The position numbers and the translations under genes are program-made. From Dendrobates tinctorius (lineage: Eukaryota): a DNA stretch of 64,000 nucleotides. Location: contig NW_027361763.1 of assembly GCF_039654945.1 (NCBI RefSeq), forward strand, positions 7,006,001 to 7,070,000, read 5' to 3'. The notes beneath the pieces were generated by a model. It saw nothing but the letters and a program-made list of their open reading frames with translations. It was not told where the DNA came from and did no database searches. Positions 17,831-57,045 of this stretch are shown here, one piece after another. Each line of letters starts with the position of its first letter. Position 1 is the first letter of the stretch.

Positions 17831-17933
17831 AATAGTGTTGAGCATTCCGATACTTAGTTCCGATACTTTTTTCATATCGAATACCGGAATCGGAAGTTCC
17901 CATAATGCTAGGAGCCCGCTCGATTTGATTCAG

Positions 17934-18044
17934 CCAATGGGGATCCTCAGAAGTGTGGGCATATCCTGTTAGGCATGTAGGCATGTTAACTACTGGCATG
18001 GCTGTGATTGGCTGCTGAAATGATGTCATGATGCACTATAAAAA
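17934..18044 (+). promoter_or_regulatory. Putative Pol II promoter of the hAT transposase
   Basis: CCAAT (17934), inverted CCAAT (ATTGG, 18007) and TATAAAAA (18037), pointing toward the transposase. Motif evidence only. Confidence 0.5.
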
Positions 18045-19050
18045 GCGCTGCAGCCACCATTTCTGGTCACTCTGCTGTGAATTCAGTTAGGGACAGGCTG
18101 CTGTTGAAGACTGTGAGGGACAGTTAGAAATAGCGATTCTAAAAACAATATTGTGCTTTATCCAGGCTACATAAACCACCACTGTAGCTTGTTTTTCCCT
18201 AGCAGCGCTGTTTTCACAGCTGTCTGCAAGGGCTGTGTGAGTGCAGACCCACGCTGTGTAGTGTGTCCTGCAGGCACGTCTGCTTGTAGGCCGGCCAGCG
18301 TGTGTCTCTGCCTCATACACATTTTTCTTTTATTGCTGCTTTTTTTTTCTCCTGTATAGTGTGCTTCCATACGTATCCATATACGTTGGTTGCAAACACT
18401 AAAGGAGTGGACAGCGGAGCCTTTCAGCAGCCTTTCAGTGCTATAGCCCATTTCTCTGCACTGTTTTTGGCTGTCTGATAGGTCTCTCTGTGTGTGAGTG
18501 CAGCTCACGTTGCAGTGAGTTCTACAGCCACCGCTAGCTGTAGTCCGCTCAGCGTGCGTCACTGCCTCATACATAGTCCTTTTTTTGCAGCAAATTTAGC
18601 CAGATTTTTGCTCCTATATTAGTGTGCTTCCAACCGCATCCATTGTCATTGGTTGGTTGCAAACACTATATAGGATTAGATAGAGGAGCCTTTTTGCTGG
18701 CTTGTGCCCTTCAGGGCCAGCCAGGCTAGTATCACCCTATTTTTTGGAGCCTCATCAATTGCATTGTAGGTTAGCTTCCTGCATTGTAATCGCTCCAAAA
18801 AGTTTGTGATACTATAGCTTTCAAACTTTGGTCACATCCTTTCCTTTCCCCCCACCCAAAAAAAAAGGAAATAAAGTTCACCAAACACTCCACTTTACAG
18901 TTGTCTAGGCCACATTAGATCATATTAAAGTGTAGTACACACACTCTTAGCCAAATTAGTGTTTCTTATACTGGTTAGCAGGTGTTCAGGAATAAGAACA
19001 CTAAGCCACCACTTTTTTACTTTTCTGCCTATCTTTATCAGTCTACCAAG

Positions 19051-22000
19051 ATGAAGAAGGCAGGGAGTAAGGCACGTGGTCGTGGCCGTGGAGTTTCAGC
19101 AGGGAGAGGACGGGGGGATTCAGCAGGGAGAGGACGTGGGGATTCGGTATCTGCTGTGGCCACCAGTGACCCGGCATCCCCCACTTTTACCAGGCAACAG
19201 TCCTTCATGCGCAGCTTTGTAGGACCTCGCCGTACCCCACTGCTGCGTGACGAACAAATTGAAGCCGTTGTCGGATGGATGGCAGCTAACGCATCCACTT
19301 CAATGACTTCCGCATCCTCCCAAGGCCAGAGCACTGAAGAGCAACCATCTGTCTCTTCACCACCTGCCAAATTGCCCAGGCAGTCTGAGAGCCCTGGACA
19401 GGAGCCATCTCAATCTTTACTTCTGTTCTCAGAATCTGTTGGCTTGGAAAGAGGTGGCCAGCCAAGCAGCATTCTAGAGCATGAAGAAGAGGGAGTATGC
19501 AGTGATGTGCAACTGCTTTGTCCCTCTGAATCTGAAGAGGCGGGTGGGCCAGTGCCTATGGTCAGCACACCTCAGTATGCATCAGATGATGATGAGACTC
19601 AGTTGCCAATTTCTGGTGCGTACTGTGCTGGCGAGACAACCCAGGACCAGCCGGTGCTTGAAGAGGGGAGTGGAGATGATGAGGTCCTTGACCCGTCATG
19701 GCGTCAGCCACAGGAAGGTGGTGGGAGCAGCTCTGAGGAAGAGATTCCCCGAACGGCCAAAAGAGGAGGGAGAGGGCGGGGGCAGACTTGGTTGCCTGTA
19801 GCCTCCACTTTGGCACCCATGAGGAGAAATCCTCTTCCAAAACACAAAACGGGCGCTCCCAGGACTTGCAGTGCGTGGTCTTTTTTTGACACAGTTGCAG
19901 ATGACATTTGCTTTGTCAAATGCAAGCTGTGTCATCAGAAAGTGAAACGAGACAAAAAATGTGACCAACCTCAATACCACAAATATGTGGAAACATGTGC
20001 GTACCAAGCACGAGGTGGAGTTACACAGACACACTGAAGATGTAGGCCAACCTTCAGCAGCACCTACCACCTCTTCAGCTCGTGTTGGGGCCTCTTCCTC
20101 CAGCTCACACAGAGCTGGTTCGGCTTCCTCACTGGAACGCCATGGAAGAACCACTGCCACTGTTGTCCAGAGACCCAGTGAAATTCCACCCACTGAACCA
20201 CGTTCGCAGTCATCAGCACCCTCCCAGGCCACTCACCAGCAATCGGTAGCACAGGCATGGGAGAAAAAGCGGCCATACTCGGCAAACCATCCCCGAGCAC
20301 TGGCTCTGAATGCCGGCATTGCCAAACTACTGGCCCTTGAGATGCTGTCATTCAGGCTGGTGGAGACTGACACATTCCGGAACTTTATGGCAGTTCCACA
20401 ATACAATGTGCCCAGCTGCTTTTATTTCAGCAGGCAAGCTGTCCCTGCCCTGCAAAAGCATGTGGAGGGAAAAATTAAAAGTGCGCTACTAAATGCCGTC
20501 AGTAGCAAGGTCCACCTGACCACCGATGCGTGGACCAGTAGCCATGGACAGGGACGATACCTTTCCCTCACTGCCCATTGGGTCAATGTTGTGGAGCCGG
20601 GTACAGATCTGGAGAGTGGCTCTGTACGTATTCTGCCAACTCCAAGGATTGCAGGAATGCAGTCTGTACATATTGAGTCCTCCTCCTACTCTAGTTCCTC
20701 GGAATCAGCACTGCGTGAGCCTGTTAGGCCAGATATGAGCACAGGTGTGGCCAAACGTCAACAGGCCATCCTTAAATTAATTTCTTTGGGGAATCGGAGC
20801 CACACAGCACCGGAGCTCTGGAATGCCATCAAGCAGGAGAGCGATGTGTGGTTTGTGCTAGCGAATCTCCAGCCAGGTTTGGTAGTGAGTGACAATGGCC
20901 AAAATCTAGTGGCAGCTCTGGGCCTAGGCAACCTCACTCACATACCATGTCTGGCACACGTGCTCAATTTGGTCGTGCAGAGCTTTCTGAGGGACTATCC
21001 GGATCTTGATGCACTGCTGCACAAGGTTCGCCTAGAGTGTGCTCACTTGCGGCGTTCCAGCATGGCAAGATCGCGCATTGCATCTCTGCAACGCCGATTC
21101 CGCCTGCCAGAACATCGCATCATATGTGACCTCCCCACCAGGTGGAATTCAACGTTACATATGTTGGAGCGGTTGTGTGAGCAGCAGGCAGCAGTAATGG
21201 AGTACCAGCTGCATCAGGCGCAAACAAGTCGCACTGTGCGCCGGACACACTTCACCACCACTGAGTGGGCCACTATGAGGGACATCTGCCAAGTTTTGCG
21301 TGCCTTCGATGACTCCACGCGGATGGCCAGTGCAGATGATGCACTAATCAGCATGACTGTCCCCCTCATCTGTCTGCTTCAAAAAACCTTACAAGCACTA
21401 AGTGAAGAGGTTTTTGAAGAGGTCGAGGATGAGCAGTCAGAAATGCCATCTGTTTCTGGCAAGTCTGCGCAACGTGCTTCCACACAAAGGCCAAGGCAGG
21501 GGACACTTAGTGAGGAGGATGACGAGGAGTCAATGGAGGAGGAGGAACACATCTCTCCAGAGGAGGGAGGTACACAAGGCTCTAGTAGTCAGTGTGTACA
21601 GCGAGGGTGGGGTGATGCTGAGCAGGCAGAGATGCTGCCTCAAGCTGGGGACAGCGTTTCCGGTCCAGTTGGCAGTCTGCAGCACATGGTTGATTTCATG
21701 CTGCAGTGCTTGTTAAATGACCGCCGCATCGCCAACATTCTCCACACGGCTGATTATTGGGTGTACACCCTCCTAGATCCTCGCTACCAGGACAACTTAC
21801 AAAGCCTCATACCACAGTTGAACCGGGAGCGAAAAATGCGGGAGTACCAAGAAACACTTGTGCAGGCCATCATGTTCTCCATTCCCCCCACAAGTGTTGC
21901 TGGTAGTGCTTTTCAAAGCAGCCATGTGGGTAGAGGCAGTGGAGGAAGCTCTGCACAAAGAGGTAGCAGAGGCAGTGCCGCAGGACAAGGCAAGGCCAGT

Positions 22001-22384
22001 ATGGCCCAAATGTGGAAAAGTTTTGTGGGACCGCCACAAACGGCTACACCATCACAGATGGCTCCAGTCAGCAGGAGGCAACGTTTCCGTCAGATGGTGA
22101 CAGACTACTTGTCGTGCCCTGTTAGTGTTCTCCCAGACGGCTCTTCCCCGTTCAAGTATTGGGACTCTAAGCTGGATACATGGCCAGAGCTTAGCCAGTA
22201 TGCATTGGAGGTGCTGGCTTGCCCTGCTGCCAGTGTATTATCGGAACGTGTCTTTAGTGCTGCAGGTGGTGTGGTAACAGACCGTCGCACGCGACTATCC
22301 GCCGATAATGTTGACCGGCTTACTTTTGTGAAAATGAACAAGGCCTGGATCTCACCTGAATTTGCCAGTCCTCTTCCAGAATAA
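19051..22384 (+). pseudogene. hAT transposase (ZBED4/ZBED6-like: BED finger, DDE core, dimerisation domain), 1110 aa if one frameshift is repaired
   Basis: BED finger SAWSFF...CKLC...NLNTTNMWKHVRTKH is split by one extra A in the A6 run at 19954-19959. Intact motifs HLTTDAW (D), VSDNG (D), CLAH (CxxH), TRWNS and SERVFS (E); N-terminal RG repeats. Confidence 0.92.
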
Positions 22385-22432
22385 ATAATTGGCTGGCAAC
22401 AGGATCCAGGTCTCCTGTTGTGTTCATGTTTC
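22380..22432 (+). terminator. Putative polyadenylation signal overlapping the transposase stop codon
   Basis: AATAAA at 22380-22385 includes the TAA stop; GT-rich TGTTGTGTTCATGTTT follows about 30 nt downstream. Confidence 0.45.
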
Positions 22433-22439
22433 TATGACC

Positions 22440-25400
22440 TGAACTTTATTTCCTGGGCTACAGCAACGCCCGTTGTTGATCAGAAGTGCTGTCCGCACAG
22501 ACAAAACACTCGCTCATGTGTAAGTGGGGTTCGGTAACGTCAGCTGATCCCCTGCTGTGTGTACGGCAAACTCTCCTGCTGCCTACAACTTCTGACTACC
22601 TCTGATTTAATATGTTCTCTGATTTGCCCTCTGTCTCCACTCTGTTTTGAGTATTTCCTCCGGCCTACAACACCGCCTCTTTCTGCTCTCAAGTGCCGTC
22701 TGTACAATCCACACTTGATCCTGTGGTACCTGGGTCCTGTAACATCTGCTCATCTCCAGAGTTGAGCACGGCAATGTCTCCTACTTTGTCTACATTCCCA
22801 CTACTTGTAGTGGAAATGTGGACAGAGCAGGAGACATTGCCTGACTCACCTCTAGGGAGAAGCTGCTGTTACAGAACCCCAGTAACACAGGAACAAGTGT
22901 GGGTTGTGCAGACAGCATTTCAGAGCAGCAACTGACGTGGTTGGAAGCCAGTGGAAATACTCGAAACAGAGTGGAGACAGAGGCCTAATTGGATTACGTT
23001 GACAGTTAGTAGTAGTCTAGAAACAATCGCAAACTGCCACCAATTAGGCCTCGGCCTACTACCTGATTTTCCCTGGGCTCCGACACCGCCAGTTGGTGCT
23101 CAGAAGTGCTGTCCGCACAGACAAAACACTCGATCATGTGTAAGTGGGGTTCGGTAACGTCAGCTGATCCCCTGCTGTGTGTATGGCAAAGTGTCCTGCT
23201 CCCTCCACAGTCAAACAACCTCAGATTTACACCTGGCTCCAAGTAGGCCTCGGCCTACTACCTCATTTTCCCTGGGCTCCGACAACGCCAGTTGGTGCTC
23301 GGAAGTGCTGTCCGCACAGACAAAACACTCGCTCATGTGTAAGTGGGGTTCGGTAACGTCAGCTGATCCCCTGCTGTGTGGAGGGCAAAGTGTCCTGCTC
23401 CCTCCAAAGTCAAAATACCTCAGCTTTACACCGGGCTCCTAGTAGGCCTCGGCCTGCACCCTGGTTCTCCCTGGGCTCCAACAACGCTAGTTGGTGCTCG
23501 GAAGTGCTGTCCACACAGAAAAACACACTCGTTCATGTGAAAGTGGGGTTCAGTAACGTCAGCTGCTCCCCTGCTGTGTGGAGGGCAAACTGCTGCTGCC
23601 TCCAAATTGTAACTACTTCAGATTTAAACATTCTCTGATTTGGCCTCTGTCTCCACTCTGTCTCTAGTATTTCCCCTAACCTCCAACACCGCCAGTTCCT
23701 GCTCACAGTCGCCGTCCACGAATTCCACACGTGTTCCTGTGTTACTGGGGTTCTGTAACATCAGCAGATCCCCCAATATGTGTCCGCCACTGTCTCCTGC
23801 GCTGTCCACCTTCCCACTGCAAGCGGTGGGAAGGTGGACAGAGCAGGAGACAGTGGCAGACACACATCAGGGGATCTGCTGACATTACAGAATCCCAGTA
23901 ACACAGCAACACGTGTGGATTGGGCAGACGGCTACTGTACGCATAAACTGGCGGTGTTGGTAGTCACGTGAAATCCTGGAAACAGAGTGGAGACAGATGC
24001 CTAATTGGAGCACGTTGACAGTCTGTTGTAGCCTACAAACACTGTTAAACTGCCACCAAGTAGGCCTCGGCCTGCACCCTGGTTCTCCCTGGGCTCCAAC
24101 AATGCTAGTTGGTGCTCAGAAGTGCTGTCCACACAGAAAAACACACTCGGTCATGTGAAAGTGGGGGTCAGTAACGTCAGCTGATCCCCTGCTGTGTGGA
24201 GGGCAAAGTGTCCTGCTCCCTCCAAAGTCAAAATACCTCTGCTTTACACCTCGCACCTAGTAGGCCTCGGCCTGCACCATGATTGTCCCTGGGTTCCAAC
24301 AATGCTAGTTGGTGCTCGGAAGTGCTGTCCACACAGAAAAACACACTCGTTCATGTGAAAGTGGGGTCAGTAACGTCAGCTGCTCCCCTGCTGTGTGGAG
24401 GGCAAACTGCTGCTGCCTCCAAATTGTAACTACTTCAGATTTAAACATTCTCTGATTTGGCCTCTGTCTCCACTCTGTCTCTAGTATTTCCCCTGACCTC
24501 CAACACCGCCAGTTCCTGCTCACAGTTGCCGTCCACGCATTCCACACGTGTTCCTGTGCTACTGGGGTTCTGTTACGTCAGCAGATCCCCCAATATGTGT
24601 CCGCCACTGTCTCCTGCGCTGTCCACCTTCCCACTGCAAGCGGTGGGAATGTGGACAGAGCAGGAGACAGTGGCAGACACACATCAGGGGATCTGCTGAC
24701 ATTACAGAATCCCAGTAACACAGCAACACGTGTGGATTGGGCAGACGGCTACTGTACGCATAAACTGGCGGTGTTGGTAGTCACGTGAAATCCTGGAAAC
24801 AGAGTGGAGACAGATGCCTAATTGGAGCACGTTGACAGTCTGTTGTAGCCTACAAACAATCTAAAACTGCCACCAAGTAGGCCTCGGCCTGCACCCTGGT
24901 TCTCCCTGGGCTCCAACAATGCTAGTTGGTGCTCAGAAGTGCTGTCCACACAGAAAAACACACTCGTTCATGTGAAAGTGGGGGTCAGTAACGTCAGCTG
25001 ATCCCCTGCTGTGTGGAGGGCAAAGTGTCCTGCTTCCTCCAAAGTCAAAATACCTCAGCTTTACACCTGGCTCCTAGTAGGCCTCGGCCTGCACCCTGGT
25101 TCTCCCTGGGCTCCAACAACGCTAGTTGGTGCTTGGAAGTGCTGTCCACACAGAAAAATACACTCGTTCATGTGAAAGTGGGGTTCAGTAACGTCAGCTG
25201 ATCCCCTGCTGTGTGGAGGGCAAACTGCTACTGCCTCCAAATTCAAACAACGTCTTATCTTAAACTGCCTCCAAGTAGGCCTCAGCCTACAAAATGACTA
25301 TCCCTGGGCTCCAACATCGTCAGTTGTTGCTCGGAAGTGCCGTCCATACAGAAAAACACACTCGTTCATGTGAAAGTGGGGTTCAGTAACGTCAGCTGCT

Positions 25401-27492
25401 CCCCTGCTATGTGGAGGGCAAACTGCTGCTGCCTCCAAATTGTAACTACTTCAGATTTAAACATTCTCTGATTTGGCCTCTGTCTCCACTCTGTCTCTAG
25501 TATTTCCCCTGACCTCCAACACCGCCAGTTCCTGCTCACAGTTGCCGTCCACGCATTCCACACGTGTTCCTGTGTTACTGGGGTTCTGTTACGTCAGCAG
25601 ATCCCCCAATGTGTGTCCGCCACTGTCTCCTGCGCTGTCCACCTTCCCACTGCAAGTGGTGGGAATGTGGACAGAGCAGGAGACATTGGCAGACAAACAT
25701 CAGGGGATCTGCTGACATTACAGAACACCAGTAACACAGGAACACGTGTGGATTGGGCAGACGGCTACTGTACGCTTAAACTGGCGGTGTTTGTAGTCAC
25801 GTGAAATCCTGGAAACAGAGTGGAGATAGATGCCTAATTGGAGCACGTTGACAGTCTGTTGTAGCCTACAAACAATCAAAAACTGCCACCAAGTAGGCCT
25901 CGGCCTGCACCCTGGTTCTCCCTGGGCTCCAACAACGCTAGTTGGTGCTCGGAAGTGCTGTCCACACAGAAAAACACACTCGTTCATGTGAAAGTGGGGT
26001 TCGGTAACGTCAGCTGATCCCCTGCTGTGTGGAGGGCAAAGTGTCCTGCTCCCTCCCAAGTCAAAATACCTCTGCTTTAAACCTGGCTCCTTGTAGGCCT
26101 CGGCCTGCACCCTGGTTCTCCCTGGGCTCCAACAACGCTAGTTGGTGCTCGGAAGTGCTGTCCACACAGAAAAACACACTCGTTCATGTGAAAGTGGAGT
26201 TCAGTAACGTCAGCTGATCCCCTGCTGTGTGGAGGGCAAACTGCTACTGCCTCCAAATTCAAACAACGTCTTATCTTAAACTGCCTCCAAGTAGGCCTCA
26301 GCCTACAAAATGACTATCCCTGGGCTCCAACATCGTCAGTTGTTGCTCGGAAGTGCCGTCCATACAGAAAAACACACTCGTTCATGTGAAAGTGGGGTTC
26401 AGTAACGTCAGCTGCTCCCCTGCTGTGTGGAGCGCAAACTGCTGCTGCCTCCAAATTGTAACTACTTCAGATTTAAACATTCTCTGATTTGGCCTCTGTC
26501 TCCACTCTGTCTCTAGTATTTCCCCTGACCTCCAACACCGCCAGTTCCTGCTCACAGTTGCCGTCCACGCATTCCACATGTGTTCCTGTGTTACTGGGGT
26601 TCTGTTACGTCAGCAGATCCCCCAATGTGTGTCCGCCACTGTCTCCTGCGCTGTCCACCTTCCCACTGCAAGTGGTGGGAATGTGGACAGAGCAGGAGAC
26701 ATTGGCAGACAAACATCAGGGGATCTGCTGACATTACAGAACACCAGTAACACAGGAACACGTGTGGATTGGGCAGACGGCTACTGTACGCATAAACTGG
26801 TGGTGTTGGTAGTCACGTGAAATCCTGGAAACAGAGTGGAGACAGATGCCTAATTGGAGCACGTTGACAGTCTGTTGTAGCCTACAAACAATCTAAAACT
26901 GCCGCCAAGTAGGCCTCGGTCTGCACCCTGGTTCTCCCTGGGCTCCAACAACGCTAGTTGGTGCTCGGAAGTGCTGTCCACACAGAAAAACACACTCGTT
27001 CATGTGAAAGTGGGGGTCAGTAACGTCAGCTGATCCCCTGCTGTGTGGAGGGCAAAGTGTCCTGCTCCTTCCAAAGTCAAAATACCTCTGCTTTACACCT
27101 CGCTCCTAGTAGGCCTCGGCCTGCACCATGATTGTCCCTGGGTTCCAACAATGCTAGTTGGTGCTCGGAAGTGCTGTCCACACAGAAAAACACACTCGTT
27201 CATGTGAAAGTGGGGGTCAGTAACGTCAGCTGCTCCCCTGCTGTGTGGAGGGCAAACTGCTGCTGCCTCCAAATTGTAACTACTTCAGATTTAAACATTC
27301 TCTGATTTGGCCTCTGTCTCCACTCTGTCTCTAGTATTTCCCCTGACCTCCAACACCGCCAGTTCCTGCTCACAGTAGCCGTCCACGCATTCCACACATG
27401 TTCCTGTGTTACTGGGGTTCTGTAACATCAGCAGATCCCCCAATATGTGTCCGCCACTGTCTCCTGCGCTGTCCACCTTCCCACTGCAAGCG
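22440..27492 (+). repeat. hAT cargo array 1: 199-bp units with ~360-bp fold-back cassettes, higher-order period 817 or 1016 bp
   Basis: GTAGGCCTCGGCCT recurs every 199-200 bp. Palindromic cassettes start at about 22620, 23640, 24457, 25473, 26489 and 27307 (last one half). Confidence 0.95.
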
Positions 27493-29315
27493 GGGTTCCA
27501 GCACGCCTGCTGTTTCCGGGTAGTGTCAAGGTCACTATGCCACCAATCCGTTGTCCTGTCGTCTTGCGGCCGGGTTAGCCGACTCTACGGTGCCTGCAGT
27601 TTAGGTGACTCCTATGTGGGCTGCGGGAACTGGCACTGAAGGCTGGATCCGTAGTGCCAATGGGACATGGACCCCCTGTAGGACTGTGGGTTTCGGTAAC
27701 TGCGGCCGGCTTGCGGCCTGGCTACTTTGCTTTCAATGGGTACCTTCTGCTACCCACCCGGGTTCCAGCACTGTCTGCTGGTTCTCGCCAGAGCCTTTGG
27801 CCTAGGTGCCTCCATCTCGGTATCCGAGGTCCAGCACCGTCAGCTGGTCCTTGGTAGTGCTTTCTAGCACAGGTACCTCCTGCCTAGTAACCGTGGTCCA
27901 GCACCGTCAGCTGTTCCTCGGTAGTGCCATTGGCTCTTGTAGCTTTTGATACCCATCTGGGTTCCAGCACCGTCAGCTGGTTCTCGGCAGTGTCTTTGGC
28001 ACGGGGACTCCCTGTTGCCCAGCCTGGTTCCAGCACGCCTGCTGTTTCCGGGTAGTGTCAAGGTCACTATGTCACCAATCCGTTGTCCTGTCGTCTTGCA
28101 GCTGGGTTAGCCGACTCTACGGTGCCTGCAGTTTAGGTGACTCCTATGTGGGCTGCGGGAACTGGCACTGAAGGCTGGATCTGTAGTGCCAATGGGACAT
28201 GGACCCCGTGTAGGACTGTGGGTTTCGGTAACTGCGGCCGGCTTGCGGCCTGGCTACTTTGCTTTCAATGGGTACCTTCTGCTACCCACCCGGGTTCCAA
28301 CACTGTCTGCTGGTTCTCACTAGAGCCTTTGGCCTAGGTGCCTCCATCTCGGTATCCGAGGTCCAGCACCGTCAGCTGGTCCTTGGTAGTGCTTTTTAGC
28401 ACAGGTACCTTCTGCTTAGTAACCGTGGTCCAGCACCGTCAGTTGGTCCTCGGTAGTGCCATTGGCTCTTGTTCCTTCTGCTACCCATCCGGGTGCCAGC
28501 ACTGTCTGCTGGTTCTCGCCACAGCCTTTGGCCTAGGTGCCTCCATCTCGGTATCCGAGGTCCAGCACCGTCAGCTGGTCCTTGGTAGTGCTTTTTAGCA
28601 CAGGTACCTTCTGCTTAGTAACCGTGGTCCAGCACCGTCAGTTGGTCCTCGGTAGTGCCATAGGCTCTTGTTCCTTCTGCTACCCATCCGGGTTCCAGCA
28701 CTGTCTGCTGGTTCTCGCCACAGCCTTTGGCCTAGGTGCCTCCATCTCGGTATCCGAGGTCCAGCACCGTCAGCTGGTCCTTGGTAGTGCTTTTTAGCAC
28801 AGGTACCTTCTGCTTAGTAACCGTGGTCCAGCATCGTCAGTTGGTCCTCGGTAGTGCCATTGGCTCTTGTTCCTTCTGCTACCCATCCGGGTGCCAGCAC
28901 TGTCTGCTGGTTCTCGCCACAGCCTTTGGCCTAGGTGCCTCCATCTCGGTATCCGAGGTCCAGCACCGTCAGCTGGTCCTTGGTAGTGTTTTTTAGCACA
29001 GGTACCTTCTGCTTAGTAACCGTGGTCCAGCACCATCAGTTGGTCCTCGGTAGTGCCATTGGCTCTTGTTCCTTCTGCTACCCATCTGGGTGCCAGCACT
29101 GTCTGCTGGTTCTCGCCACAGCCTTTGGCCTAGGTGCCTCCATCTCGGTATCCGAGGTCCAGCACCGTCAGCTGGTCCTTGGTAGTGGTTTCTAGCACAG
29201 GTACCTCCTGCATAGTAACCGGGGTCCAGCACCGTCAGCTGTTCCTCAGTAGTGCCATTGGCTATTGTTCCTTCTGCTGCCACTACGGGTTCCAGTACTG
29301 TCAGCTGGTTCTCGC
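27493..29315 (+). repeat. hAT cargo array 2: ~66-bp units in a 199-bp higher-order repeat, plus a 532-bp duplication
   Basis: CCAGCACCGTCAG(C/T)TGG about every 66 bp. Repeated ORF starts at 28338/28537/28736/28935/29134 (199 apart) and 27605/28137 (532 apart). Confidence 0.95.
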
Positions 29316-29317
29316 AT

Positions 29318-29880
29318 GAAGACAACCACCAAGATACAGAACAAAAGACAGAAGAACAAGATGCAGAAGAAGCAAAAGCAGAAGAACAGAAAGAAGAAGA
29401 ACATTAAGCATAAGACAAAAAATCAGCATAGAAGAAATCAAAATTATAAGCAGAAGAAGACTAAGCAGTAAATGGGGGTGAGTCCGTTCCTCCTCGTGGT
29501 GCCCCTGGAAAATGCCTGCTGCTGCAGGCCAAACTGAACGCGGACAAATCCTGTTGTAAATCTTTTGTGACAGGCAGAACGTAAGGTGTAATCTTATAAC
29601 TTTTATAGATAAGTACTACAGGAATGCCTGTCGCCATAAGAAAATGAAGAAAAAGAAGAATAGGAAGAAGATGAAGAAATAGCATATGAAAATTAATAAT
29701 AGCTGAATAAGAAGAATATGAAGAATGGAAAAAAAAAATAATGGGAAGAAGGTGAAGAAGAAGAAGATGAATAAGGTGAAGAAAAAGTTGATGAAAAAAA
29801 TGCTACTGCTGCGGATCATGAAGGAGAAAGTGTGGGAGAAGTACAAAAGTAGGTGAAGAGCATGGAAGTTGTGAAACATA
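29318..29880 (+). repeat. A/GAA-rich low-complexity tracts (29318-29472, 29636-29880) around a GC-richer island
   Basis: AAGAAG/AAGCAG runs on both sides of 29474-29635. Confidence 0.85.
29474..29545 (+). ncRNA. Candidate HDV-like self-cleaving ribozyme
   Basis: P1 GGGGGUG/UGCCCCU with G1-U wobble; P2 GUCCGU/GCGGAC; P3 CC/GG; L3 UCCUCGU; P1.1 CC/GG; P4 GCCUGC/GCAGGC; J4/2 CUGAA. Core CCUCCUCGUGGU versus HDV antigenomic CCUCCUCGCGGU. Confidence 0.7.
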
Positions 29881-30240
29881 CATATCTGACTAAATATAAA
29901 AAAGTTAACATAGTCAATATCTTTTTAACTCCAAACGTCTTGAAAAAAAAAATTGGAATTAATGCTATGCCATGTGATTTGAATAAACCATTATGCTTTT
30001 AATGTCTCCTCCACCTCCCACAATACATTCTACATGATTCTTATTTGTTTTCAATTATGTAGAATTAGCCAACAAGGAAATAAAGGGCTTTTTTTAATTC
30101 CGATACCGGAAGTCCCATTGACTTGAATGGGACTTCCGGTATCGGAATCGGCGATACCCGATATTTTTTTCGTATCGGGCGATACCATCCGATACAATAT
30201 TTTTGGGTATCGAACGGTATCGCTCAACACTATATATAAA

Positions 30241-31626: not shown

Positions 31627-32946
<1,320 letters not shown>

Positions 32947-39276: not shown

Positions 39277-39762
39277 GGAAAGATATATATCTTTGTACCG
39301 TGTTAGCCAGTAGATAGAAGAATATTTAGAATTGAGAGTCCTCAGTGGTTGATACTAGAGTTGAGCGACTTTGGTCGGATCGGGTTTCATGAAACAAAAT
39401 TTGTTTCAGATGAAACTGGTCCAACTAGGGCAAAAAAAAGTCGGAGTTTCGTCCGAAACCCAACCCCAATGCAAGTCAATGGGGAATAAAAGTCGGCATT
39501 GAGTGGATGACATTCATCCACTCAATGCCGACTTTTATTTCCCATTGACTTGCATTGGGGTCGGGTTTTGGACGAAACTCTGACTTTTTTTTGCCCTAGT
39601 CGGACCAGTTTCATCTGAAACAAATTTTGGTTAATGAAACCCGATCCGACCAAAGTCGCTCAACTCTAGTTGATACCTTTTAATGGCTAACTGAAAAGAT
39701 GGTAACAAATTGCAAGCTGAGTAGTCACGAAAGCTTGCAATTTGTTACCATCTTTTCAGTTA
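39277..39762. mobile_element. Penelope-like pLTR fold-back remnant (continues at 44143-44193)
   Basis: Inverted copy (39277-39718) then forward copy of the 33220-33350 sequence; interrupted by a hAT MITE and the Harbinger. Confidence 0.7.
39356..39668. mobile_element. Palindromic hAT MITE
   Basis: TIRs TAGAGTTGAGCGAC; near-perfect 313-bp palindrome; exact 8-bp TSD GTTGATAC. Confidence 0.92.
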
Positions 39763-56350: not shown

Positions 56351-57045
56351 TAGTGTTGAGCGATACCTTCCGACATCGGGAAATATCGGATCAGATTGGA
56401 TCGGACCGATACCCAAAAAGTATCGGATATCGCCGATTCCAATACCGGAAACCAATGCAAGTCAATGGGACACAAATATCGTAATGAAAATAAACCCTTA
56501 TTTTCCTTGTAGGTTAATTGTACATGAAGGAAAACAACTAAGAATAATGTAGAATGTATTGGGGGAGGTGGAGGAGACATTAAAGGCATAGAGGTTTAGC
56601 CCAATCAAATGGAATAGCAGGAATTAATTTTTTTTAAGACGTTCGGAGTTACAAAGATATTGACTATGCTAAACGGGTTGGCCGGGCTTTTCACATAATC
56701 TCAGTGCATATCTGGGCTGCAGAATGCTGACAATAAGTAATCAACCTTACATGGTTAGTCTGCACGGTTTCCAAGATATCATCTCTTGCTTCTAAAATAA
56801 ACGTCCGGGAGGGTGTGTTCTGGCATTGAAATGAGAACTGGTGGTTTCCTCCTCCCTCACTAGTTTCATTTTCCATAGATCACTGTTCAGCGTGTGTCTG
56901 GGGAAGGAGCAGCTGGGTGGTCTGCTCGCAGCCAATCACAGCCATGCCATTAGTTAACATGCCTACATGCCCAACAGGATGTGCCCACACTCTTAGGATT
57001 TCTCATTGGCTGAATAAAATCAAACTGGCTCATTGCATTATGGTA
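56351..57045 (-). mobile_element. Internally deleted relative of the 12.4-kb hAT; one TIR lost
   Basis: TAGTGTTGAGCGATAC end; 56500-56672 matches the reverse complement of ~29905-30090 and 56928-57045 that of ~17900-18015. Confidence 0.8.

Follow-up and report, generated by a model that had tools for sequence, protein, structure and literature searches.

HDV-like ribozymes are known from deltaviruses, from the 5' ends of retrotransposons, from one mammalian intron, and from bacteria and phages, and their usual home is in retroelements rather than DNA transposons. Self-cleaving ribozymes also occur in 3' untranslated regions, as exemplified by the CLEC2 hammerheads of mammals. A full-text literature search returned no paper tying HDV-like ribozymes to DNA transposons, whether hAT or other. 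Among the ribozymes of R2 elements, CCUCCUCGUGG is the string with the highest conservation, in Drosophila and zebra finch alike, and R2 has not been found in amphibians (PMC5035012).

The DNA analysed here, referred to as the window, is a stretch of 64,000 nucleotides from the frog Dendrobates tinctorius. Judged from its sequence, a 72-nt segment within a transposon of this window is a genuine HDV-like ribozyme motif of the CCUCCUCGUGG-core subgroup, which includes the R2 ribozymes and many theta-type ribozymes from phages and giant viruses, with a probability that we put at roughly 0.55. The features that bear on this reading are collected in the table.

Table. Coordinates of the candidate ribozyme, its parts and the surrounding transposon (position 1 is the first letter of the window)
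Feature	Position	Strand	Remarks
Full-length hAT DNA transposon	17833..30232	+	TIR and TSD; ~12.4 kb, Dendrobates tinctorius window
hAT transposase ORF, 807 aa	19961..22384	+	Pfam Dimer_Tnp_hAT (PF05699), 1.9e-14
Conserved non-repetitive island	29455..29640	+	~186 nt between purine-rich low-complexity tracts; 72 nt are the candidate
Candidate HDV-like ribozyme, 72 nt	29474..29545	+	Predicted cut between U29473 and G29474
P1	GGGGGUG 29474-29480 with UGCCCCU 29500-29506	+	7 bp: 4 G-C, 3 G-U including G29474-U29506
P1, alternative 6-bp reading	29474-29479 with 29501-29506	+	Used in the gapless alignment to model R2
P2	GUCCGU 29482-29487 with GCGGAC 29540-29545	+	6 bp
P3-L3-P3' core, U-CCUCCUCGUGG-U	29488..29500	+	Inner 11 nt are the R2 ribozyme core
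P3	CC 29489-90 with GG 29498-99	+	Two C-G pairs
P1.1	GG 29507..29508 with C29492-C29493	+	C29492-G29508, C29493-G29507; L3 positions 2-3
P4 hairpin GCCUGC-UGCU-GCAGGC	29514..29529	+	6 bp; spacers AAAAU and CAAA on either side
J4/2 CUGAAC, candidate catalytic C29534	29534..29539	+	CNRA plus 2 bases
First AATAAA signals past the transposase stop	29982 and 30079 (29982..30084)	+	Strand scan

The host element carries the terminal inverted repeat TAGTGTTGAGC at either end and is flanked by a perfect 8-bp target-site duplication, TATATAAA. Together with a transposase containing the hAT dimerisation domain, these features place it in the hAT class and bear out the hAT setting proposed in the preliminary description of this DNA. 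The closest relatives of the transposase are found in Ranitomeya variabilis, with a ZBED-like protein at 78% identity to the 807-aa ORF. The ORF is followed, in this order, by ~7 kb of arrays, a purine-rich tract, the island, purine-rich repeats and the 3' subterminal region. The tandem arrays (22440-29315) are built from units of 199-200 bp with a 66-bp sub-period and long inverted repeats between units, and the same arrays are contained in the R. variabilis copies of the family.

A distance of 7.1 kb, which includes the tandem arrays, separates the candidate motif from the transposase stop, and the only poly(A) signals follow ~500 nt after the motif. No AATAAA or ATTAAA is present on the plus strand in 22385-29981, tandem arrays included, so that the first poly(A) signal met by a transcript of the transposase would probably lie past the candidate. 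The surroundings are those of a hAT element and neither of the two contexts seen in the R2/theta subgroup, a 5'-terminal position in a non-LTR retrotransposon or the neighbourhood of a viral tRNA. A nested retroelement insertion at the motif was considered and rejected: the similarity of the flanks is no better than in shuffles, hence there is no target-site duplication around the motif. The window also holds an internally deleted relative of the element (56351-57043, minus strand), which retains ~330 bp from the 3' end and ~120 bp from the 5' region. Transposase, arrays and island are all missing from this relative, yet it was mobilised, and the island is therefore dispensable in cis for transposition. 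Just downstream of the hAT element lies a Tc1/mariner-like transposase fragment, a 113-aa ORF at 31839-32180.

On the plus strand the candidate reads GGGGGUG-A-GUCCGU-U-CC-UCCUCGU-GG-UGCCCCU-GG-AAAAU-GCCUGC-UGCU-GCAGGC-CAAACUGAAC-GCGGAC. The preliminary description had traced P1, P2, P3, L3, P1.1, P4 and J4/2 through this stretch, and all of them are present in the sequence at the positions it gave, in the order of a nested double pseudoknot (P1-P2-P3-L3-P3'-P1'-P1.1'-P4-J4/2-P2'). P1 has 6-7 bp and the G1-pyrimidine start of the class, G29474-U29506, which is followed by four G-C pairs and U-G, and the cut placed between U29473 and G29474 agrees with this fold. L3 is UCCUCGU and satisfies the published rule UYYHCG(N)Y. 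For P2, a rival 5-bp register, 29485-89 with 29536-40, can also be read from the sequence. The minimum-free-energy structure of the isolated 72-mer is the nested part of the fold.

Two parts of the fold depart from published descriptions of the class. The J4/2 segment CUGAAC exceeds the published limit of CNRA plus at most one base, and the third, outer position of P3, where the published descriptor demands a Watson-Crick pair, is a mismatch, U29488-U29500. C29534 had been named as the candidate catalytic base, and it appears to be the right candidate; the other base considered, C29530, was rejected because it would need a J4/2 of 10 nt, beyond the longest natural example (6 nt).

A set of natural ribozymes with the same core was assembled from IMG/VR by scanning for the core, then GGU, 6 or 5 free bases, and then UGG, which gave more than 110 matches each. 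Complete HDV-like folds were found among these matches in 31 and 24 unique sequences. This group of ~55 unique viral HDV-like ribozymes (L021-L242) has the core CCUCCUCGUGGU in common, and probably represents the theta-type or minimal HDV-like ribozymes (cf. PMC10879173). Several of the core-bearing sequences come from giant-virus bins (GVMAG), and some precede a tRNA-like sequence, e.g. L123. Between about a third and half of the core occurrences fold, and compensatory changes are plentiful in their P1 and P2, bearing in mind that the folds were picked by requiring pairing. The geometry of the candidate, GGU followed by 6 nt and GG, is exactly that of the second natural set (P1 of 6 bp, P3 with three positions). 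Natural counterparts of CUGAAC are CUGAAU, CUAAAU and CUAAGA, 6-nt forms of J4/2 being common in the set, and the spacer-P4-spacer layout recurs in L036, L060 and L122. The base 5' of CC is A or G, able to pair with U, in 54 of the 55 natural folds, whereas the candidate has U29488. The only natural fold with the same U-U mismatch is L232:11838-11873 (minus strand). The mismatch is thus clearly selected against in natural ribozymes. The preliminary description had counted the long J4/2 and the short P3 among its deviations. The long J4/2 and the offset P4 fall within the natural range; the P3 defect is real.

Two covariance models were trained on natural sequences only, model R1 on the set with a P1 of 7 bp and model R2 on the set with a P1 of 6 bp, from which L232 was left out; a full-length model with P2 was dropped because MAFFT lost the register of P2'. 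Model R1 recovered the two HDV ribozymes with 25 and 21 bits, and model R2 scored the held-out natural ribozymes at 21-40 bits. The candidate was the top hit of the window with both models, at 16.4 bits and E 0.05 with R1 and at 21.3 bits and E 0.0034 with R2, E-values that are rough and optimistic, since calibration was short and hairpins without a core reach 17-19 bits. The alignment to model R2 is gapless (35/35); the core at 29489-29499 agrees at 11/11 positions, and the flanking P1' and GG are in register. The core-less hairpins, GGTTTCA...TGAAACTGG, are the two arms of one element and score with model R2. This element is palindromic and MITE-like (39360-39670), and its ends, TAGAGTTGAGCGAC, resemble the hAT terminal repeat.

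The hAT family is very abundant in D. tinctorius and occurs in a second species too. Within 29472-29567, T29513G in an unpaired spacer is the sole well-supported variant, and the deviations from the consensus fold, which had been taken as peculiar to the copy in the window, turned out to belong to the whole family. The bases in which the window copy shows minority states of the family are A29470 and A29471, the family consensus being GT at these positions. The island is present in four copies from R. variabilis (L001, L006, L007 and L008) and is ~91% identical to them, as against ~77% over the whole 3' region. One further copy, L002, was left out of the motif comparison, its 3' end being outside the locus range. 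More distant hAT families (~50% protein identity; L003-L005) from D. tinctorius, Phyllobates terribilis and R. variabilis were considered as well and have neither the island nor the fold.

Inside the motif, the differences between the window and L006, L007 and L008 are confined to 29510 and 29513, both in the spacer, and to 29519, where the change hits the loop-closing pair of P4 and is uncompensated. All three substitutions are situated in J1.1/4 or at the tip of P4. Compared with the same three copies, the 47 critical bases show no change, against 14 changes in the 154 other bases of the island (Poisson p ~0.014), which is a hint of constraint. Copy L001 alone carries G29482A in P2 and G29507U in P1.1, breaking both helices. 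At L001 10001-16781 an annotated 1296-aa protein combines the family's hAT transposase with a KRAB domain, and may represent a host-transposase fusion gene. Over the five copies, 20 of the 23 pairs are invariant, three are only broken and none covaries, so that the helices are neither freely disrupted nor backed by covariation.

The resemblance to a ribozyme could have arisen by chance, the sequence being ordinary non-coding transposon DNA that holds CCTCCTCGTGG with complementary flanks and was never a ribozyme. The apparent conservation of the island would then stem from the youth of the family and from the rapid evolution of the low-complexity repeats on either side. A loose topology descriptor finds 10 sites in the window and 9.8 in shuffles, so the traceability of the fold is by itself worth nothing. 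The 20-mer around the core has 11 matches in metagenomes, all of them plain GC-rich bacterial DNA without the fold, and none in the viral contig scan. Searches with RNArobo and Infernal models had been proposed in the preliminary description, and the outcomes with the RNArobo descriptors and with the Rfam models both went against the candidate. It fails the Lupták-lab descriptors hdv-looseP4 and hdv-stemP4 (RNArobo supplement, PMC4870747, Fig S11/S13) as well as every single relaxation of them. No Rfam model matches it at the gathering score, and queries of 261 nt and 88 nt stayed without a match at a threshold of E 10, whereas Rfam recognises both ribozymes of the control HDV genome contig (L020), with 106 and 64 bits. 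The absence of covarying pairs in the five copies and the position of the U-U mismatch, at a selected site, are likewise what a look-alike would show. A large scan is moreover certain to meet any motif in a high-copy repeat. The candidate passes the descriptor only when the U-U mispair in P3 (P1 then being 6 bp) and the extra base in J4/2 are both allowed. In block-shuffled windows (n=2183) matches per window number 0.0018 with the strict descriptor and 0.019 with the doubly relaxed one, and over ~250,000 windows a few matches at the relaxed level would be expected overall. Yet with the doubly relaxed descriptor the candidate is the sole match in the window, and the site and its homologues are the only matches in 390 kb of real frog DNA. 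When a short J1/2, two P1.1 pairs and the P4 hairpin are added, none of the 2183 shuffled windows matches. Random flanks around the exact 11-mer core complete the relaxed fold in 6e-4 of trials, which cannot account for the third to half of natural core occurrences that fold. The fuller version (short J1/2, GG P1.1 and P4 hairpin) is completed in ~3e-6 of trials, and the true significance lies below all these computed figures because the thresholds were set after the candidate was known. Also against chance are the top rank in the window with covariance models trained on unrelated natural ribozymes and the sparing of critical bases by the subfamily substitutions. With its significance discounted for the post hoc thresholds, the motif is well beyond chance for one window. 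A chance origin is disfavoured, and we consider it unlikely.

It is also conceivable that the island is kept for another reason, such as splice signals, a small transcription unit or a captured exon start, and that the fold is incidental. This explanation would fit the wider extent of the conservation, which spans 29436-29645 and continues ~95 nt beyond the 3' side of the fold. The sequence offers a consensus 5' splice site, GGGG/GUGAGU, at 29478/9, and a pyrimidine tract with CUGCAG/G at 29527/8 that resembles an acceptor, but the GT..AG span between them is just 49 nt, and the annotated chimeric gene models of R. variabilis skip the splice-like sites of the island and have their terminal exons outside the element. 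TATAAG, located 24-29 nt ahead of G29474, and a T4 tract at 29564-29567 look like the limits of a ~94-nt transcription unit, but no Rfam small-RNA family matches. ATG29472 opens MGVSPFLLVVPL, which is signal-peptide-like, and the core 11-mer can be read as Leu-Leu-Val codons, as it can in the chance matches from metagenomes. The ORF beginning at this ATG (29472-29537) has 21 codons, MGVSPFLLVVPLENACCCRPN, but ends after 15 in the copies from R. variabilis. Although the splice-like, TATA-like, T4 and ATG strings are invariant in the five copies, the complementarity of P1, P2 and P1.1 is predicted by none of the splice, transcription or exon readings. Taken together, we regard conservation for such a reason as quite improbable.

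A genuine HDV-like motif need not be an active one. The U-U mismatch in P3 is avoided in natural ribozymes, and weak activity is therefore to be expected; one R2 ribozyme with a mismatched P3 has been recorded as active, so that the defect of the candidate need not be lethal (PMC3774820). From the sequence, measurable cleavage appears somewhat doubtful, and a genuine motif that does not cleave would otherwise be the disabled remnant of such a ribozyme. All runs were available as contigs, and in those presumed to derive from RNA the contigs continue across the predicted cut site without a break. Read depth was considered as a sign of cleavage and rejected: the rise at 29454 also appears in a DNA run, and hence reflects copy number or conservation and not RNA processing.

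On the favoured reading, all full-length copies of this hAT family of dendrobatid frogs carry the motif on the transposase strand. If it is active, upon plus-strand transcription P1 (6-7 bp) and P1.1 would dock the cleavage site under L3/P3, with C29534 in J4/2 as the general acid, by analogy with the HDV-type mechanism. The predicted break would leave a 2',3'-cyclic phosphate upstream and a 5'-OH downstream. Since the motif is situated past the ORF and the arrays and before the only poly(A) signals, cleavage would part the transposase and array RNA from its poly(A) tail. The outcome could be either damped expression of the transposase or a non-polyadenylated array RNA. That an active R2/theta-type ribozyme has been kept in the 3' untranslated part of a hAT element, cutting the transposase-plus-array RNA off its poly(A) signals, is a tentative and rather unlikely proposal. 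It would be the first case of a self-cleaving ribozyme that serves or hinders a DNA transposon, and would come from a vertebrate class without known R2. Should the motif cleave, DNA transposons too would use self-cleaving RNA, here probably to fix the 3' terminus or the abundance of the transposase/array transcript, and the recurrent CCUCCUCGUGG active site would extend to amphibians. Should it not cleave, it would be a calibrated example of a non-functional sequence nearing the HDV-like consensus.

Among known systems, the CLEC2 hammerheads resemble the candidate in placement. Their position between ORF and poly(A) would likewise uncouple the message from its tail, although they belong to another ribozyme class, and the proposed placement of the candidate in a 3' UTR is read solely from the missing earlier AATAAA. 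With the HDV antigenomic ribozyme (RF00094) the candidate shares CCUGG after P1, the order of helices and a match at 11 of 12 positions to CCUCCUCGCGGU, a match reported in the preliminary description that holds against a real HDV genome contig (L020). It differs in that RF00094 gives no match (E above 10), the sequences of P1, P2 and P4 are unrelated, and the candidate has a P1 of 6 bp or else a P3 of 2 bp. The theta or minimal ribozymes known from phages and giant viruses (Kienbeck et al. 2024, PMC10879173) share with the candidate the 12-nt core and the geometry of GGU, 6 nt and GG, and its score with model R2 falls in the range of the held-out members. Some members of this set also have a J4/2 of 6 nt (CUGAAU, CUAAAU) and the spacer-P4-spacer layout. 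They are viral, mostly located beside tRNA genes, AT-rich and often without P4, in all of which they differ from the candidate. The host of the R2 ribozymes is a non-LTR retrotransposon inserted in 28S rDNA; they occupy its 5' end and free the element RNA, whereas the candidate lies deep in the non-coding 3' portion of a DNA transposon. The third P3 pair is A-U in both R2 and HDV and U-U in the candidate. In the remainder of the fold the R2 ribozymes and the candidate have the double-pseudoknot order, the G1-U wobble and a variable P4 in common. The P3-L3-P3' string CCUCCUCGUGG of Drosophila R2Dm and zebra finch R2-1_TG is identical to that of the candidate at 11 of 11 positions, which, as far as the sequences go, makes the core match to the R2 ribozymes closer than the HDV match named earlier.
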